Assembly: GCA_054661495.1 (NCBI GenBank)
Contig: BAAFSQ010000096.1
Span: 1 to 32,000, forward strand
DNA from: Zygophlyctis sp. KS116
Taxonomy: Eukaryota > Fungi > Chytridiomycota
DNA length: 32,000 nucleotides
Direction: 5' to 3'
Made by a program: the position numbers and the translations under genes. Below are positions 28,407 to 30,518 of this stretch, one piece after another. The notes beneath the pieces were generated by a model. The model saw nothing but the letters and a program-made list of their open reading frames with translations, searched no databases and was not told the DNA's origin. Position 1 is the first letter of the stretch; every line of letters begins with the position of its first letter.

Positions 28407-30518
28407 ATGCAAGTTGAACCATTCCACAAGACTTTAGAAAAGCAACTACTGGAGGAGAGTAAGCCTGGAGTGCTCTCTTCCTTGCTAAAGTCTTTAAAGA
28501 AGGGTAAATAGTGCTGCATTCATTCTATAGTTGAACTTAATCCGCTCATTGTAACTGCTTATGATTCGATAACCGACCCTGTGCTAGTTGTGTCGATATC
28601 AAACTCTTCAATCATATATGCTAATAAAGCTGCTACTCAACTGTTTCAGTATTCTCTCAAAGGACATTCACTTGATGGTTCTATTCCAGGTCTTGGAATA
28701 CTACTGAAGAATTCACAGCATGTGAGAGAAGAGAGAATGGATGGATTTAAAAAGGATGGATCTGGGTTTCCTCTCTTAGTTTCTGTTGGGAGACTAGCTA
28801 AAGAAGGGATAAACTCAAAGAATAATTTGGAAAATGATGTGGTGGTTTTGACGCTAAATAAGATTCCAATCAAGACTAATACCACACTCTCTAGATATAA
28901 ACAGGAATTTGAAGAGATAAAAGTACTCGGTAGGGGAGGGTTTGGTATTGTCCTTGAGGCAAAGAATAGATTAGATGGTCAATACTATGCAATCAAAAAA
29001 GGTAGGACTAGATTTTGTAATTTTAGTTCGGTTAAACTGTTCACCAGAAAACTTTACACTCTTTACAAATTCATCTACTCCTAGCACTACAGCAGGTAAA
29101 CGGCACTCAAGGCATTTATCAGCATCAGATCATCGTCTTTTAAATGAGGTGAAAACTTTTGCACTTTTATCTAATCATCCAAATGTGATTAGATACTATA
29201 ATGCTTGGATTGAATCAACAGAAGATTCTGATCAGAATTGTGATGAATCAGATACAGAGTCTGATGAGTCTGTGGAACTTGATAGAGTACATCAGTCCAC
29301 ATTGTACATACAAATGCAATTATGTCCTTATCAGGATCTAAGAAGATGGATTAGATCTAGAAAAGATATCAATTTAGATTCTTGCATGAATATCTTTTAT
29401 CAAATTACCTTGGGATTGGCTCATATTCACTCTCAAGGTGTCATTCATAGGGATGTTAAACCTGAAAATATTTTTGTTGATCAAGATCATATATTTTTGG
29501 GTGATTTTGGTAAGGATCTAATAATTTAAATTATAGGACTGGCAAAACAAATCGAAGAATCTGCTTTATCTCCCAGTCCAAGAGTATCCTTTTTGAAACC
29601 TCTAGTAAATAGTACGGATGATGGTATCTAATCTAAATCTTATATCTAGGTACATTCATTTATATGGCCCCGGAAAACAAGACCTGTCAGATTTCTACCA
29701 CCAAATCTGACATTTTTTCTCTAGGAATTATCCTATTTGAACTATTGACTCAATTTGACACTGATATGGAGCGGGCAGTCATGCTGAACAAGCTTAGATC
29801 GAGCCATAAGATCCCTCAATTCTTAATTGATCAATTTCCTGCCCAGTCATATCTTTTAAGCGAACTTATTTCGCAGGCTCCTGGAGAACGGCCGACAGCT
29901 CAAGAAATTCTTTCAAGTGGTATTTTTGTAAAGAATTCACGGCGTGTCACAGTATCTTCCTTTGGAGGCTCAACTTCAGAGTCTCCAGCAAATGAATTCC
30001 GTTTGCATTCACCACCACAAAAGTCTGCATTTGAACTAAAGTCTCCCCTTCGTGAGACACAGTCTGAATTCTGCCTTGAAATCCAAACCGAGGAGACTTT
30101 TTGTCGATCACGCAGAAAAACTGAAGATGTAATCTGGATGCCTTGGGGACCATCTCAATTAGATCAAGGTGAAGATCATCACTCTATCGTGCCTACAGGT
30201 TGTAATGACAAATTATCATGTTCATATAACCAAGGTGGGAGTAATAGGCCTAAACCAGAAAATGCATCTTCATCTTACTATCCACAGACTGATTTTTCTC
30301 AAATCGATCCAAAACATCGAATTCTATCATTGGAACGGGATGTTGCTTGTTTGGAGGCCAAGTTGAAAGCCATAACTGCCCATTACCAACTGATTGAAAC
30401 AGAATTGGAAAAAAGTCAAGTTGAATCACCTTTTAAAGCTCCATCATCAACATCATTTCCCCTTGAAGAGGAGGACAATGCATCATCTTTTCCAATCCCA
30501 ATTCCCTCTCGGAAATGA
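28407..30518 (+). CDS. eIF2-alpha kinase family protein with N-terminal PAS domain
   Basis: PAS: [37 protein letters not shown]. Kinase: [41 protein letters not shown], acidic insert, [34 protein letters not shown]. Introns 28504-28530, 29002-29026, 29510-29536, 29624-29649. Confidence 0.9.

Follow-up and report, generated by a model that had tools for sequence, protein, structure and literature searches.

Gene structure and transcription

The window analysed here is a 32,000-nucleotide stretch of the chytrid Zygophlyctis sp. KS116 (assembly GCA_054661495.1, contig BAAFSQ010000096.1, positions 1 to 32,000), and at 28407–30518 on its forward (+) strand lies a gene in which an N-terminal PAS domain runs into a protein kinase of the eIF2-alpha kinase (PEK) group. 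The gene is real and transcribed, and it is a chytrid fusion of PAS with an eIF2-alpha kinase. Read from the list of open reading frames (ORFs) and their frames, it has five exons and four introns, all on this strand, and its exons total 2007 nt, that is, 668 codons followed by a TGA stop (30516–30518). The source assembly amounts to 12.7 Mb in 1175 contigs; its introns are tiny, the nearest named homologues are those of chytrids, and matching RNA is found in lakes. Pfam, PDB and homologue searches were run exon by exon, using 28407–28502, 28533–29000, 29029–29508, 29539–29622 and 29652–30515 as queries for exons 1 to 5.

Exon 1 (28407–28503) provides the start codon, placed by ORF and frame, and an N-terminal helix that is conserved in the relative P0001. 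Exon 2 (28531–29001) encodes the PAS domain and, after a linker, the beginning of the kinase as far as the catalytic-site Lys (AIKK), with Pfam matches to both PAS_8 and Pkinase on the one exon translation. Exon 3 (29027–29509; Pkinase, 2.7e-23) continues with the helix C Glu, the PEK acidic insert, LYIQM, HRDVKPEN and the beginning of DFG, exon 4 (29537–29623, from frame and translation) with the activation segment, and exon 5 (29650–30518) with the kinase C-lobe, tail, coiled coil and stop. The introns lie at 28504–28530, 29002–29026, 29510–29536 and 29624–29649, with lengths of 27, 25, 27 and 26 nt; each is of the GT..AG type, beginning with GTA and ending with TAG or CTAG. Splicing is required, as read-through would meet a stop in frame within intron 1 and a change of reading frame at introns 2 and 4; intron 3 splits the DFG codons. 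In the predicted protein all frames are open and every catalytic motif is intact.

RNA from the environment supports the splicing of intron 2. In a freshwater metatranscriptome (run X1, record 2) a 417-nt contig spans 28708–29149 with exactly the 25 nt of this intron missing, and thus connects PAS to kinase across a spliced intron. Much of the gene is represented, at 90–100% identity, in contigs from four RNA runs. One contig (run X2, record 6) matches up to 29510, at the edge of intron 3, after which 7 letters are unaligned. A sequence search returned matches in 13 RNA runs (12 freshwater, lake, estuary and wetland studies). Several further X2 contigs match the window only over about 30–45 nt around HRDVKPEN (29441–29484) and then diverge; they stem from other organisms that share these conserved kinase words and do not represent the gene.

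Downstream of the kinase is a Ser/Pro/Glu-rich disordered tail of about 128 residues (29937–30320) with no Pfam match, followed by a C-terminal coiled coil of 4.5 heptads (30321–30413) in regular register, with I, V, L, Y and L at positions a and L, L, I and I at positions d. No transmembrane segment is found: the maximum 19-residue Kyte-Doolittle values are 1.25–1.37, and the 1.37 peak lies within the PAS domain. HRI dimerises through a C-terminal coiled coil (PMC9520036), and similar C-terminal coils occur in the family members P0024, P0027, P0124 and P0168 and in this genome's own HRI-like paralogue. An earlier sequence-only reading of this DNA had proposed four introns of 25–27 nt, a PAS–kinase junction inside one exon, a disordered tail and an HRI-like C-terminal coil, and all of these hold; the kinase motifs that it quoted are present without exception, including the acidic insert and DTDMER.

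Two neighbouring observations concern the locus. P0001, a 199-residue protein of an uncultured relative, is 75% identical to exon 2, and its counterpart of intron 1, also 27 nt, is free of stops and was translated in frame (..KRGKQQHLSLVELNPL..) by a prokaryote-style gene caller. Upstream of the kinase gene, an Xaa-Pro aminopeptidase-like ORF (26999–28348) has a 27-nt intron near 28160–28186, and only 58 nt separate its end from the kinase start codon, making the locus very compact.

The PAS domain and its FixL-like relatives

Pfam, structure prediction and structural comparison all place a PAS domain at 28542–28862, consisting of an N-cap helix, strands A–B, helices C–F and strands G-H-I. Only PAS families match the N-terminal exons in Pfam: over residues 8–54 of the exon 2 translation PAS_8 scores 26.5 bits against a cut-off of 21.8, PAS_9 (24.6) falls below its cut-off of 27, and the PAS family itself gives a weaker match. 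Structure prediction with AlphaFold2 (AF2) gives exon 2 a predicted local distance difference test score (pLDDT) of only 36 from the single sequence, but reaches a pLDDT of 90.6 and a predicted template modelling score (pTM) of 0.82 when supplied with 36 aligned rows of homologous segments (alignment A2). The model from this alignment has the canonical order of PAS elements, with strands at 17–21, 26–30, 66–72, 78–87 and 103–110 forming a five-stranded sheet accompanied by helices. A Foldseek search with it gives 355 PDB matches at E <= 0.001, and the best 50 of the 355 are all PAS or LOV domains at a probability of 1.00, led by the haem-binding PAS 10jx, Rhizobium FixL (RmFixL, 1d06) and DosP; as the alignment behind the model includes FixL-like relatives, this ranking may lean towards FixL, while the fold itself is secure. 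The A2 family profile likewise matches FixL (8.8e-19) and DosP (1.5e-18) best in the PDB, and reaches the PAS-A domain of human PAS kinase (PASK) at 9.5e-07. The protein thus has a single N-terminal PAS fold, homologous to the FixL/DosP-type PAS. We searched the same genome for a second copy of this PAS and found none.

The residues that would hold a haem are not those of FixL. In the window PAS a Lys occupies the F-helix column of the FixL proximal His, a Glu occupies the strand G column of the distal Arg (BjFixL Arg220), and about 13 residues are missing from the F-helix/FG loop. The domain does contain His45 and His63, but the two are not both retained even in relatives that are 69–70% identical. 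The proximal His is kept in only 5 of the 36 alignment rows, as well as in P0034 and at the Polychytrium locus described below, and is absent from 30 of the 36. More generally, the family varies most in the F-helix/FG-loop pocket region, where some members carry inserts of 50–100 residues. Exons 1 and 2 contain no Cys anywhere, and hence no adduct Cys of the LOV motif GXNCRFLQ, so the LOV reading is ruled out. With Lys and Glu at the ligand columns, a shortened F-helix and no Cys, both FixL-type haem/O2 gating and LOV chemistry are unsupported for the window copy, as judged from its residues.

A sister subclade of the family is far closer to FixL. It comprises P0015, P0017, P0020, P0027, P0019 and P0034 and, in the careful tree described below, also the kinase of Piromyces finnis (P0259) and sequences from Nowakowskiella and Polychytrium. 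P0015 matches the haem domain of BjFixL at 5.6e-22, with a His aligned to the proximal His and the O2-binding Arg kept; in the Piromyces member the His is lost. The Polychytrium aggregatum gene model (GCA_025602895.1, P0124) begins inside the last PAS strand, and the DNA upstream of it (L017:2300-3100, +) encodes the missing PAS exons, including ..LMPAQYSDNHDKYMSTYANGGTPKLLGITR and RVLKAIRRNGEAFPVEISLGE. These exons specify a FixL-like PAS with both the proximal His (NHDKY) and the Arg (GITR), and P. aggregatum is therefore a named chytrid with a complete FixL-like pocket. The public gene model is truncated at its N-terminus, which hides the sensor domain. The window-type and FixL-type PAS groups are homologous to each other, with an hhalign probability of 97.6% (E 3.3e-12, 120 columns). 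The FixL-like fungal PAS also matches the bacterial multi-PAS methyl-accepting chemoreceptors P0257 and P0258 at 32% identity; these matches fit a bacterial origin of the domain, without testing it.

The kinase and the PAS-PEK clade

Kinase subdomains I–II (28890–29001) are recognised from Pfam and from motifs. The first 31 positions of Pkinase match residues 126–156 of the exon 2 translation, and the rest of the domain follows in exons 3 and 5. The catalytic motifs GRGGFG, AIKK, the helix-C Glu, HRDVKPEN (the exon 3 catalytic motif, 29446–29469), DFG (split by intron 3) and APE are intact. An acidic insert of about 29 residues (29215–29301, exon 3) precedes LYIQM, between strands beta4 and beta5 of subdomains IV–V, and aligns with the inserts of PKR and GCN2. 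In the C-lobe encoded by exon 5 (29650–29936), which is identified from PDB matches together with the motifs G-T-FIYMAPE and DTDMER, we read both an activation-loop Thr (29652–29654, within G-T-x-x-Y-M-A-P-E) and a helix-G T-x-x-E (29760–29771, within DTDMER). The former is the equivalent of PKR Thr446, and the latter that of PKR Thr487/Glu490, with which PKR docks eIF2-alpha.

Comparison with kinases of known structure agrees with these motifs. When exon 3 is searched against all PDB sequences, the first 19 distinct matches are GCN2, PKR, PERK and HRI (5.6e-20 to 1.5e-10), and the next family is Wee1 (2.6e-10); for exon 5 the first 19 matches are again all eIF2-alpha kinases (PERK, HRI, GCN2 and PKR), with PERK best at 3.5e-13. 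The best 60 PDB matches for exon 3 and the 21 for exon 5 include no PASK chain. In maximum-likelihood trees of the kinase region, in which exon 3 or exon 5 of the window was entered as a separate partial row, both rows are placed inside the PEK set, which is separated from the genome's other kinases at 98* in the quick exon 5 tree and at 88/90, unstarred, in the careful exon 3 tree. The kinase is thus assigned to the PEK group by PDB ranking and by trees, in agreement with the sequence-only reading, whose kinase does not fall outside the eIF2-alpha kinases. Two other identities were considered and rejected: PASK by kinase type, as only PEKs rank at the top, and PERK by the lack of a signal peptide, luminal domain or transmembrane segment. 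Sensors of the GCN2, PERK or PKR type (HisRS-like/RWD, luminal, dsRBD) are also missing from the Pfam matches of the exons.

The genome contains the presumptive target and other members of the group. An eIF2-alpha gene with the Ser51 loop LSELSRKRIRS lies at the end of contig C79 (L015:3-755, −), and a second fragment of eIF2-alpha's Pfam family at the start of contig C672 (L016) may represent an allele or part of this gene, divided between two contigs in the assembly. A GCN2 orthologue on contig C205 (L002:489-2725, −) has several exons and encodes RWD, a kinase with insert and a HisRS-like region. On contig C215 (L003:943-2424, −) an intronless gene encodes an HRI-like PEK kinase of 493 residues, with a C-terminal coiled coil (LLEEINNLALEKNGLLERIKALELEIMEIK) and nothing recognisable as a domain at its N-terminus. 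One quick exon 3 tree puts this kinase in a group with an HRI-like protein of Tieghemiomyces, and the others place it weakly. Counting the PAS-PEK gene, PEK kinases in this genome thus number at least three.

With exon 2 as query, a full HMMER scan over 1.84 billion representatives returned 624 proteins, most of which match only the SRY..EFEE..AIKK kinase start that is common to GCN2, HRI and PERK, while a subset matches through the PAS domain too. This subset includes full-length PAS+PEK proteins, in the order PAS, SRY..EFEE, PEK kinase with insert, and 15 of 25 such proteins have a Pfam PAS match (best 1e-15). With an iterated profile of the window PAS, a homologous domain is recognised immediately before the kinase in about 50 of the family proteins. 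A word search with P0008 (670 residues) put names to relatives: Borealophlyctis nickersoniae, Rhizophlyctis rosea, Globomyces pollinis-pini, Gorgonomyces haynaldii, Dinochytrium, Lobulomyces, Polychytrium aggregatum, Nowakowskiella, Amoeboaphelidium occidentale, Jimgerdemannia flammicorona, and Batrachochytrium dendrobatidis, where the protein is annotated 'eIF2-alpha kinase 3'.

The PAS-PEK proteins form one clade in three of the trees, and the window row groups with P0152/P0006 in every tree. The clade and this grouping receive 97* and 95* in the quick exon 3 tree, 98* and 97* in the same tree with another outgroup, and 97/97 and 100/97 in the careful exon 3 tree; the quick exon 5 tree supports the grouping with P0152/P0006 at 100* and shows the PAS-PEK proteins as two subclades that are not joined. 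The careful tree also groups the PERK rows (100/96) and the GCN2 rows (95/74), leaves the HRI-labelled rows without a supported grouping, and does not settle the order among PEK groups, with a PAS-PEK/HRI link of 57/76. The window protein has the homologous PAS directly upstream of the SRY..EFEE kinase start and its kinase lies inside the clade. The gene is therefore a member of a PAS-PEK clade, supported at 97/97, that stands apart from HRI, PERK and GCN2. Conserved among zoosporic and a few other early-diverging fungi and aphelids, the clade spans chytrids (Borealophlyctis, Rhizophlyctis, Batrachochytrium, Globomyces, Polychytrium and Piromyces), an aphelid and an Endogonales fungus, and the window gene is this chytrid's single orthologue.

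The architecture has been noted in print once and is uncharacterised. Swift et al. 2021 (PMC10512342) described 'PERK-like' kinases of Neocallimastigomycetes with an N-terminal PAS and a predicted C-terminal transmembrane helix, remarked that this architecture is unlike that of PERK, suggested that the PAS senses redox state or oxidative stress, and left the function open. Apart from that paper, our literature search found none that joins PAS or FixL with a fungal eIF2-alpha kinase, nothing further on chytrids, zoospores and eIF2-alpha, no experimental characterisation of the architecture, and no description either of its spread over chytrids, aphelids and Endogonales or of a FixL-type pocket. 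An oomycete lead was set aside as not relevant, as the Phytophthora kinome paper has PAS on a MAPK and not on a PEK. The sequence-only reading was right that a PAS domain is present (Pfam above cut-off, a confident AF2 model and Foldseek matches to PAS), that it lacks a LOV motif, and that it is truly fused to a kinase of the PEK group. Its description of the fusion as undescribed does not stand, given Swift et al. 2021 (PMC10512342) and the orthologues in public chytrid annotations; nor does its suggestion of haem/O2 gating for this copy, in which the proximal His has become Lys, the distal Arg has become Glu and the FG loop is short. The connection that it drew with translationally dormant zoospores is conjectural.

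Proposed mechanism, origin and known systems

We consider it likely that the gene encodes a 668-residue cytosolic PEK Ser/Thr kinase of the PAS-PEK clade in which the PAS domain is a probable cofactor-free switch. Such a kinase would phosphorylate eIF2-alpha at Ser51 and so reduce translation initiation. By analogy with HRI, the coiled coil may hold it as a dimer, and the PAS domain, sitting directly on the kinase N-lobe, would then control autophosphorylation of the dimer. For the PAS domain itself the most likely mode of action, to which we give roughly an even chance, is that of an autoinhibitory or dimerisation switch that responds to some other signal and works without a cofactor, because the haem ligand residues are missing and the pocket is poorly conserved. 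We rank this mode ahead of a non-haem ligand, and a non-haem ligand ahead of haem or gas.

Several points weigh against this interpretation. Introns 1, 3 and 4 are bridged by none of the RNA contigs examined, and the analysis covers the protein exon by exon. Throughout the family, eIF2-alpha is taken as the substrate from kinase-domain similarity alone. Missing ligand residues and poor conservation of the pocket leave room for another ligand. The exon 5 tree does not resolve the monophyly of the two PAS-PEK subclades, and a complex prediction for the coil as a homodimer scores 0.10 against a mark of 0.32, which speaks neither for nor against binding.

Of the alternatives, the one that survives best is that the PAS pocket binds a small non-haem metabolite which switches the kinase, as proposed for PASK PAS-A. 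The intact, confidently modelled fold would allow this, and PASK PAS-A does match the family profile at 9.5e-07; we nevertheless regard it as unlikely, as the F-helix/FG-loop pocket is the least conserved part of the family and carries inserts of 50–100 residues in some members. We are more doubtful still that the kinase is PEK-like in sequence while acting on another substrate, outside the integrated stress response. The separation of its clade from HRI, PERK and GCN2 and the presence of both GCN2 and an HRI-like kinase in the genome could be read in this way, but the kinase retains its insert, its activation-loop Thr and its helix-G T-x-x-E, and no non-PEK kinase scores near the PEKs in the PDB searches. 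Somewhat less probable again is gating of the kinase by O2, NO/CO or redox state through haem, or another gas or redox cofactor, bound in the window PAS. The best profile matches to FixL and DosP, the haem PAS domains at the head of the structural matches and the His and Arg of the sister subclade all favour it, and they are opposed by the Lys and Glu in the window copy, its F-helix/FG loop shortened by about 13 residues, the inconstancy of His45 and His63 among relatives 69–70% identical, the lack of Cys in exons 1–2, and the absence of the proximal His from 30 of 36 aligned relatives. The view that the fusion is an artefact of assembly or gene modelling, or the gene a pseudogene, could draw only on the three of four introns without an RNA bridge and is largely refuted, to the point of being hardly credible, by the PAS and kinase start in one exon, the RNA contig that crosses spliced intron 2 into the kinase, the same architecture in independent genomes, and the open frames and intact catalytic motifs.

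Returning to a PAS that works without a cofactor, we hypothesize that this state is derived. The family probably began when a bacterial FixL-like haem PAS was fused to a PEK kinase; the sister subclade would still have the haem pocket, and in the window subclade the haem ligand and FG loop appear to have gone and the pocket region is not conserved. Polychytrium and several uncultured relatives have a full haem pocket, and the window lineage does not. Only tentatively do we extend this to the view that early fungi fused a captured FixL-type haem-PAS to an eIF2-alpha kinase, creating a further class of integrated-stress-response sensor that couples translation initiation directly to O2 or another gas, and that the window lineage re-purposed the PAS, without haem, for a different signal. 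If true, the family would form a natural series in zoosporic fungi, with gas-sensing control of eIF2-alpha phosphorylation at one end and cofactor-free control at the other.

The eIF2-alpha kinases are taught as four sensor types, and the PAS sensor of this conserved fungal clade makes a further one. The FixL-like haem pocket of some members suggests direct control of translation initiation by oxygen, two processes that animals link only indirectly, and these relatives, rather than the window copy, are the most interesting lead. The window copy, which lacks the haem residues, offers a built-in comparison for the effect of a cofactor-less PAS on a PEK kinase. Transformation tools exist for Batrachochytrium dendrobatidis (PMC10823177), and since the family is present in this species the idea of oxygen control is testable. 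The record is also corrected in two respects, as the architecture had already been reported and at least one public gene model, that of Polychytrium aggregatum, is truncated.

Among known systems, the closest are the PERK-like kinases of Neocallimastigomycetes, which share the N-terminal PAS followed by a PEK-type kinase with insert and are represented by Piromyces finnis P0259 in the same 97/97 clade. They differ in that they are reported to have a C-terminal transmembrane helix, whereas the window protein has none and ends in a coiled coil, and in that they sit in the FixL-like subclade, where the Piromyces His is also lost. HRI (EIF2AK1) and the fungal Hri-type kinases are likewise cytosolic PEKs in which a sensor precedes a kinase with insert and a C-terminal coil serves dimerisation (PMC9520036). 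The sensor of HRI is, however, a helical haem-binding N-terminal domain and not a PAS, and the window kinase does not lie inside the HRI group, to which its link is 57/76. With FixL and DosP the protein shares the PAS lineage (profile E values of 8.8e-19 and 1.5e-18) and the logic of a PAS immediately in front of its kinase, which acts, or in the window protein would act, as a dimer; their outputs are a histidine kinase or a c-di-GMP phosphodiesterase, whereas that of the window protein is a eukaryotic Ser/Thr kinase, and its PAS has no haem ligand. PASK and yeast Psk1 and Psk2 also carry PAS ahead of a Ser/Thr kinase, one with effects on translation and metabolism, and PAS-A matches the family profile (9.5e-07). 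The catalytic domain of PASK is CAMK-like, whereas the kinase pieces of the window rank only PEKs at the top. Finally, GCN2, PERK and PKR share the hallmarks of the catalytic domain with the window kinase but sense through HisRS-like/RWD, luminal and dsRBD domains, respectively; the window protein has none of these, and GCN2 is a separate gene in the same genome.

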